A model generated the notes under the pieces. That model was given only the letters and a program-made list of their open reading frames with translations. It was not told the DNA's origin and searched no databases. This document shows, one piece after another, positions 29,780 through 62,900 of a stretch of 64,000 nucleotides of DNA. The position numbers and the translations under genes were made by a program. Source of the DNA: Macrostomum hystrix (taxonomy: Eukaryota; Animalia; Platyhelminthes). The first letter of the stretch is position 1. Every line of letters starts with the position of its first letter. The stretch covers positions 7,688,001 through 7,752,000 of the forward strand of contig CATNEN010000029.1 of NCBI GenBank assembly GCA_950097015.1, read 5' to 3'.

Positions 29780-30040
29780 AAGGGCACTGGCATGCACATG
29801 ATTTTGTGACAGTGGACCCTCAGCCAGCGAAGAGGCAATTCTGTGCATTCCACTGAATCCTGTGCGCACACGCACACAGATACCATACACAGGCACACAC
29901 TCAGGCAGCGCGTATAGTACACGGCAAACCCCAATCCTTCTTTCCACGGCTGCGCCCCAAATGAATATGGCCTCGCCGCAGATTCGAGCTCAGGGACCGA
30001 GGCAGACGCGTTGGACCGCTTTGCTACGAACCCCCCACCT
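29780..30040 (-). mobile_element. SINE family A copy with internal deletion
   Basis: Reverse-complement head (GAGCTCGAATCTGCGGCGAGGCCA) and 3' domain. Confidence 0.8.
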
Positions 30041-30526: not shown

Positions 30527-33500
30527 TCAACTGCGTGACTCGCCAGCAGCCACTCCCTGCACCGACATTCCAGCTGTGGCCTGCATCGCCATCTCGATGT
30601 TATCGACTCGAGACGGTCCGTGCTTAATCAGCATGTAGATCTGCAGATTGGATTGTAAAAATCTATCAGATTTAGCTCGGCAATGACGATTCAGATGAAT
30701 ACCTTGATCGAAGGTACAACTACGAGTACGAGTACTAAAGTAGAAGGGCAGAAGAGTCTGGACTCTGAATACTCAATGCAACAGCTGCAGCTTTAGTACT
30801 TCAGCATGTGATATATGACGTGTTTTTCTATTGAATTTTTAGTTATTTAGATGCCATTTAAAGAGGATTTCAACAGTAGAAATACCCACGCTATTTTTCC
30901 CCTGGGGAAAAGCCACGGTGGTATTTCAAGTCACCACTACCTACTTCACGATATAGCTCCCAAACATAATCACCGATTTTCGTGAAATCGAAATTCTCCA
31001 CCTTTTACGATGAACATAATTTCAATAATCTGAGTCCATCTGTCGTAGGGACATTTGTTCTCAGCACGGCAACAAAAGCAGCCGTCTCTGAGATGCAGAT
31101 CGGGTGGATTTGTTGAAGGTCCCGCCGGTCACCGCCGGTTCTGCAGACAGTGATGAATTAGACCCTGGTGACTAATATGCCCACAACGAGCCGACGATTC
31201 GTTGATTTTTGGAAGATCGTCCACCGATGCATAGGATAGATATCACAATAATTGATCGGATAAAGCGGAAAATTTTAGCGCGTGTTCTGCACTTTTCGCT
31301 TGAATATTTTGGAAGATACAGGAAAAGAAATTGTGTATTAGAAATAATCACGCATGTGGTATTGCTGTTTATTTAATGAAATTAGTGTAGCTTTATTTTC
31401 CTAGATGGATTTTGTCTATGTCCCAGCCCAATCGCAAAATGCTATTTTTCGATGACATAAGAAAAGTAAGGACCACTAGAAGAAGATGGACGGGACACTT
31501 CGTTTCTTGGAAAAATATTACTCGTAAGCGCTGATTTTCACGTAAAAATGCACTAGCGAGATAGGAATTTTTCAAATTTTTCACGTTAAAGTGGTGATAA
31601 CTTCTTATTGCAAGCAGATCCAATGCTTTTCTTATGATATATCTTGCAAAACATGTTGCTTCAACGAATTTTAGAAAGTTTAATTTATGAATAAATGCCT
31701 GCGTATCTTTTTAAATCAACTCGAAGATCACATGCTCAAATTGCTTCATCTAGGACACTAATTGTCTCACCTTGCTCCCGAACACAAGCAGCAGTGTGGT
31801 GCTGGAGCACAGAATGATGCAGGTGGACACCAGCACAATGCGCAGCTCCTGGCTCCATGAGGGCATGGCAAACACTAGCACAACTCCAATGAGTCCCATC
31901 ACCAGGGTGTTGTAGACACAGACTCCAATCTTTTTTGAATCGTTGAGAGCATCCACCTGGACTGTGCGCGTCTCCCAGGCGAAGAAGATGCCGAAAATAA
32001 GTAGAAATCCTAGAGATAAAGAAGAAAATTAATTTGAATTCAAATTTGTGTTTTCGGTTGGCATGACTACTATGAGTAGTTGGCGTACCCTTGACGCCAA
32101 TCTCGATGCCGATCCAAATGTTCAAATAGTTGCAGACGCACTCGTCAATAGTTCCACGCAGTAGCGAGCCCTGGTCAGTTTCCTGAGGTTGTCGCAATAA
32201 ATGGGTTCTTTAAGAGTCACACGAGCTTAATCAAATAGTCCGAATGATACTCACCACGGCGAGCAGCACAGTTTTCTGCACTTGAATAGGATCCACAGCG
32301 GCCCAGATGCTCAGAATGGCAACGTCCACAGCCAGTACAGCCAGGATAACAGCGAACAGGTGTGAATCTTTGATGGCCTGATAATAATATTAAAAAAAGA
32401 ATTGCAGAATGACTGCAGGAAATTGCTCATCATTTGATATGCGAGGAGGCAATTCGGCCCATTTCGCTGACTCCCTGAGATGCACACACTCACACTGCTG
32501 TGTACATCTTGCTCTGATTTTCTCATCGTCAGGCAGTGCATGTACACTCTTACTGTCTTGGAGGTTGGCCCTCAAAGGGCAAGCCCCCAAGCCCCGCAAG
32601 CCTTATCTCCGTGGCTGCAGCCCCAAATAAATGTGGCCTCGCCGCGGAGTCGAGCTCAGGGATCCTGGTGAGAGAGGCAAACGCGTTAGCCGCTCTGCCA
32701 CTCACCCCACTTGATGACCTGATTGATTGAATGCAAGATATCTCGTAGCTTAAATATTTCATTTCTGTGTTTCTACTGTGAAATACTATAAGCCAGCGTG
32801 TGAGGCGGGTGTAGAAGGCCAGGGTGTGAGGTGTGTGTAGAAGGCCAGGGTGTGAGGTGGGTGTAGCAGGCCAGGGTGTGAGGCGGCTGTAGCAGACCAG
32901 GGTGTGAGGTGGGTGTAGCAGGCCAGGGTGTGAGGTGGAGGTGGGTGTAGCAGGTCAGGGTGTGAAGTCGATGTATGAAGGCAAGGCTTCCTAATATGTT
33001 GTACATTAGCTGTTTAGCTTAGTGCATGATCTTTTCACAGTTCAGTGACTATAATTATAAAATCGAGGGAGGTTTTACTCTTTAAATTGCAGCTTTGAAG
33101 AATGATTTTGAAGAATGAAGAATGAAGAATGATTAATCAACTAGAATCATGCTTATTCATCCGATAGAAATCACACGCGATAGAGTTTAAAATGCACACG
33201 GCCACTGCATCTTTTGTTACACAATCCAGGGTTTTCAGTAACAGGCAGCTGCATGCGTCTGTTGTTAAAAGACTTTAAACTTTTTTTACTTTTTAGTCAG
33301 TGAAGCAAAAGTAATTGGATTCGCATGCTCATTTGCAATCTTTACTTTAGTTTTTACGCCTTTGAAATAACCTCCTGTGTTCTTATAGATTTATCACAAT
33401 TCAGCCAACAGGAATTAAAATTCATTCTGAATAATATTTTCAAAGCCGAAAAATCCCACAGAAGCTTAACTAATACTTAGAAGCTTAGAAGCTTCACACT

Positions 33501-46660: not shown

Positions 46661-46749
46661 TCGCCCCTATTATCGTCTTAGTCGTGCCCATAATCTAATA
46701 GGTTTTTTTCTACCTCCCATCTATTCCCCAATCTCAAGATCTCACCCGA

Positions 46750-47215
46750 GCGGTGAGTGGCAGAGCGGTCTAACCCGTTTGTCTCCCGCACCAACGTCCC
46801 TGAGCTCGATTCCGCGGTAAGGTCACATTCATTTGAGGCGCAGCCGCGTAGAGAAGGCTTGGGGGCTTGTAGTGCAATTTGCGCCCTTGAGGGCCAACCT
46901 CCCAGGCACAATGAGAGTGTACACTGCCTGACGATGCGAAAGTCAGGGCAGATGTACACGCCTATGTGAGTGTGTGCTGTGTACAGTATCTGTGTGCGTG
47001 TGTGCTCAGGAGTCAGCGAAATGGGCAGAATTGCCTCCTCGCCGGCTGCGTGTTTAGTGTCACCAAATGATGTGCCCTTGCCCGCAGCCCTCCTGCATCT
47101 CACTCCATTTGAATTTATACTGCTAATAGAAAATAAATTGTTCGAATGTACAAATAAATGTGGCCTCGCCGAAGAATCGAGCTCAGGGATCTTCGTGTGG
47201 GAGCACGCATTACTA
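46750..47215 (+). mobile_element. Full-length SINE family A copy (46750-47100) followed by an inverted head fragment (47150-47215)
   Basis: GTGGCAGAGCGG...GAGCTCGATTCC head through GCCCGCAGCCCTCCTGC; reverse-complement head downstream. Confidence 0.87.
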
Positions 47216-47749
47216 CACCGATTTAAACTCCATAGAATTGTCTTTTGTCGGTAAGACAAAAGTCCTTGAAGGCCCATCTCATAGGCATGCCCTTGAGGAA
47301 GGGCAAATGCACTCAGACTGTAGTCGGTGCTAGTGTTTCAACCTGGCAAAGAAATTAAATTTTCAACAAGCCAGTTGAAATTGAAAGGATCCATTCTCAA
47401 AGGAAGCACTCAGCTAGATTGTGCAACCAGAGAGCTAGAATGCTTTACTAAATGACTTCAGTTGTCATACAACCTGCTGAGATTCTTTAAAGCGGTTATA
47501 TTTTATTTAATTAGCCTTTCATTAGACGTGATTTTGCTCAGACATCATTAGAGCTTGTCGATAGGCATGCGACAGTGCCCGTTCTTGAGCACTCATGTTC
47601 TCAAGTTGATTGCTTCCAAGGCTGAAAAGCAATCTTCACTCAGGCGCTGGCTTTTTGGCGTTCTCAACTGCTCGATTCAGCTGGAATAGGGTTGAGACCC
47701 TATTCGAGACTGGGAATATGAGAAATTATAGGTGAGAATGCTGGATTGA

Positions 47750-53782: not shown

Positions 53783-56700
53783 TCAGGCTTTGTGCTGGCT
53801 GGTGCTGCTGGTACCGTTAGCCGCTGAGGCATTGGCCTGTTCAATTTCCAGATCGTCTACGCGGTTAGGGCCCACTTTCATCAGCTGATAAACCTGCATT
53901 GGACAGAGTAAAAGTTGGATTTGCAAATTACTCTACTAAAAGTAGTAACATTCAGAAAGTGACACAATGGCACACCACTTGGTAACAGTAGAGCTGCAGC
54001 CAGCGAGGAGGCAATTCTGCCCATTTCGCTGACTCCTGAGCACGCACGCACACAGATACCCTACGCAGGCACACACTCACACAGGTGTGTACACCTGCCC
54101 TGACTTTCTCATTGTCAGGCAGTGTACACTCTCACTGTGCTTTGGGGGCCTTGGAGTTTGGCCCTCATGGGCGAACTGTAAACAGTAAACTGTAAACTGT
54201 AAACTGTAAACTGTAAACTGTAAACTGTAAACTGTAAACTGTAAACTGTAAACTGTAAACTTTAAACAGTAAGCTGTAAACTGGAAACTGTAAACTGTAA
54301 ACTGTTAACTGTAGACTGTAAACAGTAAACTGTAAACTGTAAACTGTAAACTGTAAACTGTTAACTGTAGACTGTAAATAGTAAACTGTAAACTGTGAAC
54401 TGTAAACAGTAAACTGTAAACTGTAAACTGTTAACTGTAGACTGTAAACAGTAAACTGGAAACTGTAAACTGTAAACTGTTAACTGTAGACTGTAAACAG
54501 TAAACTGTAAACTGTAAACTGTAAACTGTAAACTGTTAACTGTAGACTGTAAATAGTAAACTGTAAACTGTGAACTGTAAACAGTAAACTGTAAACTGTA
54601 AACTTTAGAGTGTAAACTGTAAACTGGAAACTGTAAACTGTAAACAGTAAACAGTAAACTATAAACTGTAAACTGTAAACTGTAAACTGTAAACTGTAAA
54701 CTGTAAACTGTAAACTGTAAACTGTAAACTGTAAACTGTAAACTGTAAACTTTAGAGTGTAAACTGTTAACTGGAAACTGTAAACTGTAAACTGTAAACA
54801 GTAAACTATAAACTGTAAACTGTAAACTGTAAACTGTAAACTGTAAACTGTAAACTGTAAACTGTAAACTGTAAACTGTAAACTGTAAACTGTAAACTTT
54901 AGAGTGTAAACTGTAAACTGGAAACAGTAAACTGTAAACTGTAAACTGTAAACTGTAAACTGTTAACTGTTAACTGTAAACAGTAAACTGTAAACTGTAA
55001 AATGTAAACTGTAAACTGTTAACTGTAAGCTGTAAACTGTAAAAAAAGAAACCAAAAATTGGTTTGTAATTTGAAATACCCGTGGACTCTTTACTGTTAT
55101 TGATACTCAACTTGCTTGCTAGTAAATTAGACTTTAATTTAAACCAATAAATCAGCTATCCAATTATAATGTTATCTACTCGTTGTAAATAGCAATCAAA
55201 GATAATTAACTACCCTTGGCGGCAGGACAAAGGTCTGTTGACCAATTGAAACCGCGATAAAGGAGTGTCACCTCAGCCTCACTATTTGAGCTATCCAATC
55301 AGAATACAGTACGAAATTATGCAATTAAACACTTCCAAGCCAAATTCAAACCTTGTGACCAAAAATGAGCACGATGGTTGTTGTGCAGCCAATCAGAATG
55401 CAAGCGGTGATGAGCACATATCGGAGACTGTGCTCACTCTCTGGCAGCACAAACGATAGAACGACAGCGATGAGGCCCATCACCATCGTGTTGTACACGC
55501 AGATGCCGATCTTCTTCGAGTCGTTGAGGCCTTCGATGTACACATTGCGAGTCTCCCAGGCCAGGAATATCCCCAGAACGAGGAGAATCCCTGCGGAGGT
55601 GGGGATGTACACATTGCGAGTCTCCCAGGCCAGGAATATCCCCAGAACGAGGAGAATCCCTGCGGAGTTGGGGATGTACACATTGCGAGTCTCACAGGCC
55701 AGGAATATCCCCAGAACGAGGAGAATCCCTGCTGAGTTGGGGATGTACACATTGCGAGTCTCACAGGCCAGGATTATCCCCAGAACGAGGAGAATCCCTG
55801 CTGAGTTGGGGATGTACACATTGCGAGTCTCACAGGCCAGGAATATCCCCAGAACGAGGAGAATCCCTGCGGAGGTGGGGATGTACACATTGCGAGTCTC
55901 ACAGGCCAGGAATATCCCCAGAACGAGGAGAATCCCTGCGGAGGTGGGGATGTACACATTGCGAGTCTCCCAGGCCAGGAATATCCCCAGAACGAGGAGA
56001 ATCCCTTCGGAGGTAGGGATGTACACATTGCGAGTCTCTCAGGCCAGGAATATCCCCAGAACGAGGAGAATCCCTGCTGAGGTGGGTATGGATGCTTGAC
56101 CTTCGGGTGTACCTTGGGGTTGTAAATGTGCCCCGATGGCATCCGGATGGCCAAGAGGACGTTCCGTAAATTTGACGAGCTTAAGTAATGTAGAAAATAC
56201 CTGTAATTAACTATTATGCAACAGACTGTGTGGGTGCCTACCTTTCAAGCCGAGGAGCACCCCAAGCCAGGTGTACCAGTGTTCGCTGCGGCACAGGTGA
56301 ATCTGAGGCCGGGTTACAATCCCATTCACTAAATCCTCCTGAAGGTAGGATTTTAAATAGTTTTTATAGCATTCGCTTAAGTTATATGCCTTCCATAGTT
56401 TGAGCCACTCATATCATAAGTCATTTGAGTCACTCATATCATCAGTCATTTGAGTCACTCATATCATCAGTCATTTGAGTCACTCATATCATCAGTCATT
56501 TGAGTCACTCATATCATCAGTCATTTGAGTCGCTCATATCATCAGTCATTTGAGTCAGTCATATCATCAATCATTTGAGTCACTCATATCATCAGTCATT
56601 TGAGTCAGTCATATCATCAGTCATTTGAGTCAGTCATATCATCAGTCATTTGAGTCACTCATATCATCAGTCATTTGAGTCACTCATATCATCAGTCATT

Positions 56701-59700
56701 TGAGTCGCTCATATCATCAGTCATTTGAGTCGCTCATATCATCAGTCATTTGAGTCACTCATATCATCAGTCATTTGAGTCACTCATATCATCAGTCATT
56801 TGAGTCACTCATATCATCAGTCATTTGAGTCACTCATATCATCAGTCATTTGAGTCGCTCATATCATCAGTCATTTGAGTCACTCATATCATCAGTCATT
56901 TGAGTCACTCATATCATCAGTCATTTGAGTCAGTCATATCATCAGTCATTTGAGTCAGTCATATCATCAGTCATTTGAGTCACTCATATCATCAGTCATT
57001 TGAGTCGCTCATATCATCAGTCATTTGAGTCGCTCATATCATCAGTCATTTGAGTCGCTCATATCATCAGTCATTTGAGTCAATCATATCATCAGTCATT
57101 TGAGTCGCTCATATCATCAGTCATTTGAGTCGCTCATATCATCAGTCATTTGAGTCGCTCATATCATCAGTCATTTGAGTCAATCATATCATCAGTCATT
57201 TGAGTCAATCATATCATCAGTCATTTGAGTCGCTCATGTCATCAGTTATTTGAGTCACTCATATCATCAGTCATTTGAGTCGCTCATATCATCAGTCATT
57301 TGAGTCGCTCATATCATCAGTCATTTGAGTCGCTCATATCATCAGTCATTTGAGTCAATCATATCATCAGTCATTTGAGTCGCTCATATCATCAGTCATT
57401 TGAGTCACTCATATCATCAGTCATTTGAGTCGCTCATATCATCAGTCATTTGAGTCGCTCATATCATCAGTCATTTGAGTCGCTCATATCATCAGTTATT
57501 TGAGTCACTCATATCATCAGTCATTTGAGTCGCTCATATCATCAGTCATTTGAGTCGCTCATATCATCAGTCATTTGAGTCGCTCATATCATCAGTCATT
57601 TGAGTCAATCATATCATCAGTCATTTAAGCAGGGCCAGGGTATCGCGATGCTTGAGAAAAGTGCACTCTATCCTTTTTTAAAGTCTCTGGCACCTGATTG
57701 GAATTTTATAACAAAGCTGTGCTATAATGGCTATGATTGTTGATTGAAAGCCGTTAATGATGTACGGATTGTGAAAGGCAGATCTGGATTGGGGCGTAGA
57801 CACAATTAGAAATATTTCAAAGCTTATAGTCACGTCCTTTTTTTTTATCATGCTTAATTACATAGAAAGCTTTTTAAGTTTATACGAACTAAGTTTGGAA
57901 CACGCCTCGTAATAATAATAATATTTTTACACTTGCAAAAAACACATGTTTTGTTTAATTAAACAATTTTAATTCTGTCTGTTTTTAATTCGGTCTGTTT
58001 AATTAAATCTTTCATGAATTCAGTTAAATTGTTTTATTTCAATTAAATTTTAATTTGAAGGTAATGTTACTTTAATCAATAATAATATTTGTATTTTACT
58101 TCAATTTAAATTCATTTAAAGGAATTGTCTATTTATAAAAAAGTCCTTAATTTTTAATTAGGGTTATAATTTTTTGTTTGCAAGAAAATGTGTAAAGATC
58201 GACCTCATCTGCCAGGCTCAGTACGGTGACAATGGGCGAGTCTACCAGGCTCCATACTACGAAGAAGATAGCGTCGGTGGCCAGCAGGACGGCGATCAAG
58301 CCAGCCAGGTGGCGGTCCTTGATTGCCTGTATGATTGGCGATGGCAGACGAATAGTTCTAGACTAGGTCGGGAGTCGAACCATCTGATCCAGAGTCCGAC
58401 ACCTTACTGTACGACTGTTCAGTCCATGGACCGGGGGACACAACACCCGCCTTGACTTTCCCCAGCTAATGCAAATATTAATTCAACAGCTGGATGAACT
58501 CAAGTAATTCAGAGTTTAGTGTCTCCTAGACGACAGAAACTGTTCGAATGGAGTCAGGAATCGAACCCTCGACCTTCAAGTCGTTAGTCCGAAACTCTAA
58601 CAACTAGGTGAGCTTCATTTGATGACACTAGACCCGCAGCCAGCGAGGAGGCAATTCTGCCCATTTCGCTGACTCCTGAGCACGCACGCACACAGATACC
58701 GTACGCAGGCACACACTCACACAGGTGTGTACATCTGCCATGACTTTCTCATTGTCAGGCAGTGTACACTTTCACTGTGCCTTGGAGGTTGGCCCTCAAG
58801 GGCGTAAATTTCACGACCAGCCCTCAAGCCTTCTCTCCGCGGCTGCGCCCCAAAAGAATGTGACCTCGCCGCGGAATCGAGCTCGCGATATCCGCTCTGC
58901 CACCAACCCCCAGCTCTTGTTGATATCCGATTTTAAAACTCCCAGCCAATTTCTTGTACTTTGATATAGTATTTATGAAAATACTATTTCACGAAATTCA
59001 TGAAGCCTGATTTCAACAGTAAGCCAGCAACTCACCATGGATCGCATCCTCTTGTTGGTGAAGATGCGATGAACTCGCCATGTCTTGGCCAGCATGCCAC
59101 CGTAGGCGGATGAATAGCCCAGGGCCAGCGAAACCTGCTGCACCCAGCACAGGCCTGAGGTTGTCAGCCAGTGTGAGTTCACCGCCATCACAATGCAGGA
59201 GCCGAAGCACAGGATGCAGCCGCACCCAATGATGTAGTTGATGTTCGGGCTGCTCATTTTGATGAAGCGTAGGTCGCGATAGCAGAAGTTGACCAGCATG
59301 GTGGCAGCAGTGAAGAGTATTCCCACTATGGCCAGAACAATCATCACAATCATGACAACCCTGCTCACAATCTGCTTCTGCAACACTAGGCGCGGCACGT
59401 CCTTCGGCAAATAGGCACCTGAACAGCGAATGGTCTGATATTAGTAAGCTGTCACTCACGTCACTGTGATGTTTTATTATGAATTGTGTGTCACAAATCG
59501 ATAGAAACATTACCTGGAAACCACAGAGGTTTAGTCCAGTTGATTGAATTAGTCCATACATTGTACAATCCAACCAAATCTCGCTTCATATCTGAAAATA
59601 TGATATTATGATATGATTTTGACTACATATTACAGTCCTCTAAAGGTAGCCTCATTTTTCTACCTATCACTTACTTCGCAGCTGATAGATGAGTACGTTG

Positions 59701-59926: not shown

Positions 59927-62900
59927 TCTCCTATATATAAGCCCGAATTATACTATTTCTCACCGTGTGGCCCATGTAGTCGACGTTTTTGAGCTGCTCA
60001 AACAGCTTCTGCTTCATCACCTCAGTGTCGTTCTCGGACATGTTCGACGCCCGCATCTCTGCGGCTGCTTTGCTAGCGGCTATCGCCGCTGTCACAACGG
60101 AGTCCATCCGGATGTCCAGCCCTGTGAGGCCGGACACTGCGGTGACGTTCTTTAAACCTGGGTACACTGACAGGAAATCCTTGTACATCTGGGCTGAAGT
60201 CTGAAATCATGCATGCTCTTCAATGAGATTCTTCGATGTATAATTTTTTTCGCAGGTTCAGCTCCTCACCTTGTTGTTAATGCCAACGCCATTGAAAATG
60301 GCGATCTCCGAGTCCATCTCAATCGAGCCCTCCATAGCGTGCGCCATTTCGTCTGGCGTGCATGAGTCATTCGTGAAGGTCGCGAGGTTCCTCGGCATGC
60401 CGATGTGGATCCAGAAATACTTCTCGCCGTATGCGCCCAGGTTGTAGATCTGTGGAGGGTGGGTGCGGCTGGATTGGAAGCATGTTTTGAAGGCCATGAG
60501 ATCGTTGAAACTTTGGCTCTGATTGGCTAGGTTCAACTACTTATCTACACACTTTGGCTCTGATTGGCTAGGTTCAACTACTTATCTACACACTTTGGCT
60601 CTGATTGGCTAGGTTCAACTACTTATCTACACACTTTGGCTCTGATTGGCTGGGTTCAATTACTTATCTACACACTTTGGCTCTGATTGGCTGGGTTCTA
60701 CTACTTATCTACACACTTTGGCTCTGATTGGCTGGGTTCTACAACGTATCCACTCACTTTGACTCTGATTGGCTGGGTTCTACAACGTGTCCACTCACTT
60801 TGACTCTGATTGGCTGGGTTCTACTACTTATCTTCTCAAGTCTTTATTTTAGTGATGGCTTCTTTATGACGCGGAGAATGGGAAATATGGCTTTTGAAGG
60901 CTCACCGTGCATGGCAGGCTATTGGTCAGGGGCTCGGCAACTACGGAGCGCACGGAGAGGAAGATCCGAACATTCTTGTTCTGAAAAGAAGCAGAAAACT
61001 TTTTTCGTTGTCTTTTGACAAGCCGTACAATGGATTTTCGGAGCATTTAAAACGATTCCTGTCTCACAAGCATCGCTGAAAGGCTCTCTGTAGCGTCCGA
61101 TTTGTACACCTGCTTGTACAGCAGCCTGATATTGTAGGCATCAATCTTGGACTCGATGTCTTGACTGACCTACACGACGAAGAAAAGTCTGCTATAACTT
61201 AAAAAATAAATCGAATCCCTTAAAGTGCGGGTCCGCCATTGCAGAATTTGACAGCAGTAAGAAACCATGATTCCATCATCATCTCTCAGTGAAAATCCGC
61301 GGGATTGTTGTGAAGCGGCCCCATGGAATGATCAGAGCAATGAGCCTACCGGAAACACAACCGCATAGTCAGAGGCCAGCAGGCCCACATTCAGCCAGTT
61401 GTAGGTGCGCAGTATCTCTAGCGCTGGGTTCACATTCAGTGCATTGTTGCCGTACATGCGAATGTAGAATGGATAGGCCACCGTGTCGCTGAGTGCTGGT
61501 GACGTGTTTGCGTAGCCAATCTGCAGTTTTATTTACGAATACCCTTTGTAACACATACGTACATCCCTCATGGGACTCAGGTGTTGTTTACAGAGGGGAG
61601 TGAGTGGCAGAGTGAGCGGTCGAACGCGTTTCCCTCTCGCACCAAGGTTCCTGAGCTTGGTTCCGCGGCGAGGCCGCATTCATTTTTGTCTTCTACAATT
61701 TACGTCATTAAGGGCACAGTGAAAGTGTACACTGCCTGACGATGAGAAAGTCAGGGCACCTGTGTGTCCGTGCCTGCGTACAGTATTTGTGTGCGTGTGT
61801 GCTTTTGAGCCAGAGAAATGGGGAGAATTGCCTCCCCTCGCTGGCTGCTTGTCTACCGTCACTAAATGATGTGCCATTGCCCGCCGCCCTCCTGCAATTA
61901 TTGTTATTATTATTAATTGTTGTGATTCTATTATTAGAATCAGTTATCGATTCGTGGAATAAGATCTTTTTGTCTGCGACCTACAGCGTACCCTGTCAGC
62001 CCAGTTCAAGACAAGGCTAATTCTCTCGCCTTGTGTGGGCTAGCCCAATCATGTCTCGGGCCAGAGAGTTGACAAGTTAAAGAAATTTTCTTCGCCGAAA
62101 ACAATCATTGCCAAGTCTGTCATCAGGAAAGTGACCCAAAAAAGGGAAAATTTGAATGGACCAGAGCCTTGCCAATAATAAGTTGGCGAGGCTCGGATTA
62201 GAGGGCCGCAGACAGGTAGCCACATTCGGAGCACCTGGGCCCCTCAGTCGGTGCTTGTCGGCAGCTACACTTATAATTCGCATTTTTGCTGCTTCGAAAG
62301 AGAATAAATGAAGGAAGAGCAAATTAGGAAAATTTTAAATTGGAGGCCTGCGTCGAGAAGCTATTGATTTCTGAAACACACGGTGCTTGGTTCCCAGGTG
62401 GCTAATGCTTCTGGCCCTACAAATAACAAGCAACTTGGATTACAGGAGAGGCACTGCAGCTTGGTGCGCTTGGCGACTGCTTCTCAGCCGCTGCTTTCTG
62501 AAAAACTATCTTTTTCAAGCTCAACTGTTTGACGTGAAGAAACTCGCCAATCGGCCATGCCGAAATTCTTGAGACATTCTCAAAATGCGAAACTCCACTT
62601 CAGGCTAGCCAAGTGTTTTGACTTTAAAGGACGTATTCCATTCGTTTCTTGTGGTAATTTTGATTTATTTTTAAATGAATTTTCTCTCTCGTCTTGTTTT
62701 TCTTTTGAGGCTGTTTTGCAGCGCTAAACTATTGCACAAAAAGTTTTCGCTCACCTGCGGCAGTCGATAGTACCTGGCCACGGCGGCCACCCACTCAGAC
62801 TGCGAAGAGTACGTGGCACCGAAGATTAGCACCTTGTCCTTGTCCGGGTAGTAGCTGCGAACTAGGGCGTGAACTGCGCTGCCCGTGTTGTCCTGGAATT

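Follow-up and report, generated by a model that had tools for sequence, protein, structure and literature searches.

The receptor gene and its paralog

The 64,000-nucleotide stretch of the Macrostomum hystrix genome analysed here (the window) carries two paralogous receptor genes on its minus strand, one of which contains a tandem repeat spanning the junction between an intron and the exon that follows it. On the similarities described below, this gene is a class C, GABA-B2-like receptor. Protein and profile searches were made exon by exon. The exon behind the repeated junction (exon 13; 55352-55590, 239 nt, with the acceptor AG at 55592-55591 and the donor GT at 55351-55350) encodes the end of TM5, ICL3, TM6 and TM7, as indicated by its matches to the 7tm_3 domain, to GABA-B2 and to the paralogous gene in the window (paralog A). 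It covers positions 175-251 of the Pfam 7tm_3 profile (PF00003) with an E value of 3.4e-12, and GABA-B2 or GABA-B1 accounts for each of its 15 best PDB sequences, with GABA-B2 chains coming first (E 4e-13). The original prediction, which had placed the border between TM5 and ICL3 of a GABA-B-type receptor here, is thus borne out, the segment from FLAWETRNV to LNDSK being aligned to GABA-B2 from residue 656 onward.

Further upstream in the gene, the exon at 58994-59422 (minus strand) encodes TM1-TM3, matches positions 5-108 of the 7tm_3 profile (E 2.7e-24), is open and is 48% identical to its counterpart in paralog A. A match to the Venus flytrap domain (ANF_receptor, PF01094) is found in the exon at 61335-61532 with an E value of 1.3e-7, this being the one exon scored against that profile. 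The nine exon segments that are detectable by comparison with paralog A are all open and 34-60% identical to it, and on account of this the gene looks otherwise intact. The exon immediately upstream of the repeated junction (exon 12; 56242-56338, minus strand), assigned from its sequence and reading frame and from a weak match to positions 32320-32388 of paralog A, supplies the first half of TM5 (…HWYTWLGVLLGLK + G). It ends in AAAG|GTAGGC, with the donor GT at 56241-56240, which is where the original prediction had placed the exon 12 donor.

Protein word searches with exon 13, with a 217-aa genomic read-through and with the TM1-TM3 exon recovered no near-identical protein and none with a repeated segment of this kind, the best database relative being a Macrostomum lignano protein with 53% identity. 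The conserved part of exon 13 (beginning LNDSKKIG) has matches at 68-84% DNA identity at no fewer than 13 other loci of the assembly, which points to a large family of GABA-B-like receptors in this genome.

Comparison with paralog A allows the ancestral layout of the junction to be reconstructed. The homologous exon of paralog A (31771-32009, minus strand) is likewise 239 nt long, is 59% identical to exon 13 and has a single T-rich acceptor, preceded by an intron of ~84 nt at the same position and in the same phase as the intron that holds the array. In both genes a phase-1 intron divides the Gly codon that follows a Lys (G + GG). The introns of paralog A are generally short, those considered here measuring ~66 and ~84 nt. 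As intron position, phase and the 239-nt exon all agree with this single-acceptor paralog, 55590 is the canonical acceptor of the array-bearing gene, and we infer its use from the same agreement; the earlier observation that the innermost acceptor yields an exon of exactly the size seen in paralog A holds on comparison of 55352-55590 with 31771-32009.

A tandem array across the 3' splice site

TRF detects on the minus strand, at 55535-56090, a tandem array of 8.1 copies with a period of 69 bp, free of indels and with 96% matches. Its score of 1014 led us to reject a chance origin. Direct reading of the eight head-to-tail copies shows that each unit consists of the last 14 nt of the intron, which are C-rich and end in AG, followed by the first 55 nt of exon 13, exactly as originally described. 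Based on the alignment to GABA-B2, this exon-derived part supplies TM5 with its second half and ICL3 with its first residues. The eight acceptor positions proposed earlier coincide with the GGATTC starts observed on the minus strand at 56073, 56004, 55935, 55866, 55797, 55728, 55659 and 55590 (units 1 to 8, numbered here from the outermost to the innermost). All eight retain the AG, in line with the earlier claim; it is preceded by C in seven copies and by A in copy 2, which reads GAAG rather than GCAG. Upstream of the array, the non-repeated part of the intron occupies 56091-56241 and, together with the 14 nt before 56073, would represent a pre-expansion intron of ~168 nt.

Every unit contains a GGGG run. 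By eye, the inner units show no branch-point motif of the yUnAy type, the sole clean example (TTTAC) lying ~50 nt upstream of the outermost acceptor; none of this is decisive for the location of the branch point. At the unit borders, the trinucleotide CAT is common to the intron (…GCATCCATACCC…) and the exon (…GTGTACATCGAAGG…), a possible microhomology. A search of the whole 220-Mb assembly finds the 69-bp unit at this single locus, and a transposable element or dispersed repeat was rejected as its source on this ground.

As 69 is 3 x 23, all units are in the same frame. An in-frame TGA is nonetheless present in the outermost copy at 56039-56041 (minus strand), in place of the Trp codon of FLAWETR, so that this copy reads GILLVLGIFLA*ETR; the X1 contigs described below cover it at a depth of ~60 with no differing letter. 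The original prediction had stated that the outermost acceptor adds seven units with no stop and that any of the eight acceptors would give a receptor with 0-7 extra segments. Both statements have to be revised, since only seven acceptors leave the frame open, and these would provide for 0-6 extra segments.

The array lies in a genome that has an exceptional abundance of minisatellites. The window contains 29 tandem arrays, which make up 26.6% of its bases and have periods of 3-76 bp and up to 124 copies, and an array is present in almost all introns of the two receptor paralogs. The studied exons themselves are flanked by arrays of 25 bp x 49 (56399-57626) and 7 bp x 124 (54174-55043). Approximately 35 kb beyond the window, at contig positions 7787085-7789244, lies a 20-bp x 108 array with the consensus ACTGCACCTCAGAGTCACTC, the reverse complement of which contains GAG|GTGCAGT. 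Additionally, an interspersed repeat family with open frames of the type ...ESAKWAELPPR... occurs on both strands, in introns of the paralogs as well as elsewhere in the window (58608-58926, 53970-54125, 32440-32705, 29792-29991, 742-900, 46681-47337 and other places).

Variation among the units

The copies of the array differ from one another by up to 7%. The inner ones are identical or one to three bases apart, and the two outer ones are two to six bases removed from the rest. Divergence of the edge copies together with near-identity of the inner ones is the ordinary pattern of minisatellites.

Within the exon-derived 55 nt, only two columns vary among the eight units. The first is the third base of the codon for the conserved Trp of FLAWETR, where unit 1 has TGA, units 3-6 have TGT (Cys) and units 2, 7 and 8 have TGG; the innermost copy, unit 8, retains FLAWETRNV. 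The second records one TTC-to-ATC change (Phe-to-Ile). All changes in the exon-derived part therefore alter the protein, i.e., the TGA, four Trp-to-Cys and one Phe-to-Ile, with zero synonymous changes, and these tiny numbers give no sign of coding constraint on the extra copies. On the other hand, the variable columns amount to 5/14 in the intron-derived part versus 2/55 in the exon-derived part (Fisher p 0.003, a post hoc comparison of eight units), and this excess could be a hint of constraint on the latter. The changes in the variable columns are mostly C-to-A or G-to-T.

The G-to-T change that converts Trp to Cys has a second effect: 33 nt downstream of every one of the four central acceptors (units 55935, 55866, 55797 and 55728) it produces the sequence CCT|GTGAGA, which resembles a consensus donor. 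The TGT codons and donor-like sites occupy 55695-55903 on the minus strand, the GT dinucleotides starting at 55902, 55833, 55764 and 55695. These sites provide candidates for phase 1-1 micro-exons of 33 nt, with micro-introns of 36 nt between them. The surroundings of the acceptors at 55935 and 55590, in turn, are identical from -69 to +32, and hence local sequence cannot explain a choice of 55590.

Copy number in sequencing runs

The read evidence consists of assembler contigs from four runs (X1 to X4), none of which is recorded as RNA, and the array is crossed in full by none of these contigs and by no read. Word depth in X1 is 78-82 over the single-copy flanks, and both borders of the array are present at that depth, including a contig covering 56057-56398 at a single-copy depth of 81.6. 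The variant-specific pieces of the array are found at a depth of 155-314, i.e., two to four times that of the flanks, and the depths of the pieces are roughly proportional to the copy numbers in the assembly: 314 for the TGG type (three assembly copies), 310 for the TGT type (three) and 155 for the AACTCAGCAG junction (two), with 108 and 58 for the single-copy types. Further, X2, which comes from another study, and X3 each provide one 99-nt contig over a unit-unit junction with 0 mismatches, and neither contains anything of the array flanks; this is expected if the data are so shallow that only repeated words pass the abundance filter of the assembler. X4, from a sister species, contributes only 38 conserved nt belonging to a paralog. 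These observations argue that the array is multi-copy in the reads and against its inflation during assembly. The X1 word depths, which stem from contigs short of the full array, even hint at slightly more than eight copies, ~1-2 above the assembly.

One variant piece is found in X1 at 0.4x depth, and the depth falls to zero in the bin 55980-56023, which holds the variants private to unit 2 (its CCCTACC and its GAAG acceptor). The two private bases of that unit could stem from a second haplotype or be errors of the assembly. A separate discrepancy occurs outside the array at 55133, in the intron downstream of exon 13, where the X1 contigs lack five bases of the assembly at full depth (78/78). 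The X2 contig corresponds perfectly to 55626-55724, that run yielding neither exon 12 sequence nor any of the unique part of exon 13. X2 dates from 2020, and its contigs average ~240 nt; it may be RNA, in which case a unit-junction contig unaccompanied by unique exon sequence would be odd and would count against the reading preferred below.

Interpretation of the expanded junction

The structural and comparative features of the locus probably reflect a young junction minisatellite that is selectively neutral and has turned duplicated exon sequence into intron, with a working mRNA being produced from 55590. Both the neutrality of the array and the choice of acceptor are what we infer from the sequence. 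The process would have begun with a tandem duplication of a 69-bp segment lying over the 3' splice site of an intron that was already present, after which unequal exchange would have expanded the array. In the course of this the intron would have grown from ~168 to 651 nt, and the first 55 bases of the exon would have come to lie within it seven times over (385 nt), with a spare acceptor in front of each copy. Production of functional mRNA would then fall to the innermost, exon-proximal acceptor at 55590, the sole one to restore the conserved 239-nt exon, and the other acceptors would either be unused or yield rare products that are aberrant or lost to nonsense-mediated decay. The original prediction had offered, as one of two readings, that intron sequence was being caught in the course of its creation from exon sequence. 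The conversion of exon sequence into intron is indeed the part that fits better, but the intron was not newly born: the coding sequence of paralog A is interrupted at the same codon and in the same phase, which indicates that an old intron has grown, as opposed to a new one having been gained.

A different outcome of the same expansion, to which we assign a minor but appreciable likelihood, is that the array harms its gene. An outer acceptor, be it 56073 or another, would be chosen, with most of the resulting mRNA either being degraded on account of the TGA or encoding a disruptive insert between TM5 and TM6, and the locus would recently have become an allele of low output or one that has lost its function. 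The TGA lies 33-35 nt into the exon defined by the outermost acceptor, and the original upstream intron with its presumed branch site adjoins this copy only. The shortness of the paralog A introns (~66-84 nt) suggests recognition across the intron, in which case the outermost acceptor, and with it the TGA, would be favoured. This consideration, in conjunction with the local identity of the 55935 and 55590 acceptors, is what gives the harmful alternative its share of probability. Loss of the gene might additionally be tolerated, redundancy being suggested by the 14 or more matches to GABA-B-like exons in the genome. Against this, all detectable exons have remained open and 34-60% identical to paralog A even though the copies of the array have had time to diverge by up to 7%, and the analogous duplication in the human CBS gene is spliced at its distal, exon-proximal site (PMC1802585). 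Splicing at 55590 with the extra copies as inert intron is accordingly the account that we prefer, in the conditional form given above.

The other reading offered originally, namely that the array constitutes a repeat-number switch, is unlikely. It supposes that several acceptors, possibly combined with the four GTGAGA sites, are used, so that 0-6 extra 23-aa segments, or else micro-exon units of 11 aa, follow TM5 and precede ICL3, with repeat number tuning the topology or coupling of the receptor. Seven of the eight acceptors are in frame and stop-free, and the GTGAGA sites 33 nt after four of them would generate units of phase 1-1. The exon-derived part is also less variable than the intron-derived part. 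Moreover, the suggestion that the extra units are hydrophobic enough to act as membrane segments is tenable on hydropathy: the 19-residue Kyte-Doolittle means of the 23-aa unit PTSAGILLVLGIFLA[W/C]ETRNVYI range from 1.7 to 2.15, as compared with 2.2 for the true TM6 and 2.6 for TM7. However, an open frame is weak evidence in this case, because one third of all periods are multiples of three and 55 of the 69 bases already belong to an in-frame exon, so that a unit which is 80% exon would be in frame and stop-free by chance about once in four times. The extra copies, carrying a stop, Trp-to-Cys and Phe-to-Ile changes and no synonymous ones, look free of coding constraint, and the protein word search retrieved no database protein with such a repeat. 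Products of this kind are in any case unlikely to work, as successive segments would be joined by loops of only ~4 polar residues and the insert would fall in the loop responsible for G-protein coupling. In its strongest form, the proposal would have all eight acceptors and all four GTGAGA sites in use, with a length-variable minisatellite setting the number of 23-aa or 11-aa units after TM5. If true, this would amount to a heritable, repeat-number-dependent switch of the topology or output of a GABA-B-like receptor, but we regard it as very improbable.

Least credible of all is an assembly artefact, by which a true locus of one or two copies would have been inflated by the assembler: the lack of any single read or contig over the whole array and the absence from X1 of the private variants of unit 2 might be cited in its favour, but the copy-number-like depths of the variant pieces between borders of single-copy depth and the junction contigs from two other samples oppose it, and the reads, if anything, suggest slightly more than eight copies.

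Relationship to known splice-site duplications

Minisatellites that include splice sites have human examples in F7, IFI6 and the 31-bp VNTR of CBS, and those described mostly amplify 5' splice sites. Zhuo et al., in PNAS in 2007, reportedly described minisatellites with repeated splice sites in human genes in terms of "introns from tandem arrays". The array in the M. hystrix receptor gene resembles these human cases in that its unit carries a splice signal, that duplicated exon sequence falls in the intron and that alternative sites arise, and it differs from most of them in amplifying the 3' splice site. Tandem arrays of splice sites are, in other words, already known from human genes, and the present locus is another instance. 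As a single locus it matters little, being a minisatellite seeded by chance over a splice site, with a human counterpart on record. Its interest lies rather in the natural experiment that it presents: the acceptors at 55935 and 55590 being identical over the interval given above, any choice that the spliceosome makes between the two rests only on long-range context. Taken together, splice-site arrays could reveal the basis on which a flatworm spliceosome selects one of several identical sites, as well as the way in which exon sequence turns into intron.

Duplication of exon sequence is an established model for the origin of introns, in which a size that is a multiple of three permits in-frame alternatives (PMC2891723). 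The M. hystrix locus agrees with this model as regards both the duplicated exon sequence that becomes intron and the in-frame size of the unit. Unlike in the model, no new intron has arisen here and an old one has instead been lengthened.

In the human CBS 844ins68 allele, the 3' splice site of intron 7/exon 8 is duplicated together with its surroundings (~68 bp), with G runs lying between the acceptors (PMC1802585), and use of the distal site was shown experimentally, according to the account of Romano et al. 2002 that is given in PMC1802585. The two loci share a tandem copy, ~68 bp in size, of an intron end plus an exon start, which places identical acceptors in a row, and the G runs of the human allele have a parallel in the GGGG of each unit described here. 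They differ in that CBS 844ins68 has two copies and the present array eight, and in that distal-site use, an experimental result for the former, is for the latter a prediction. By analogy of structure, CBS 844ins68 is the closest precedent for the expanded junction of the M. hystrix receptor gene.
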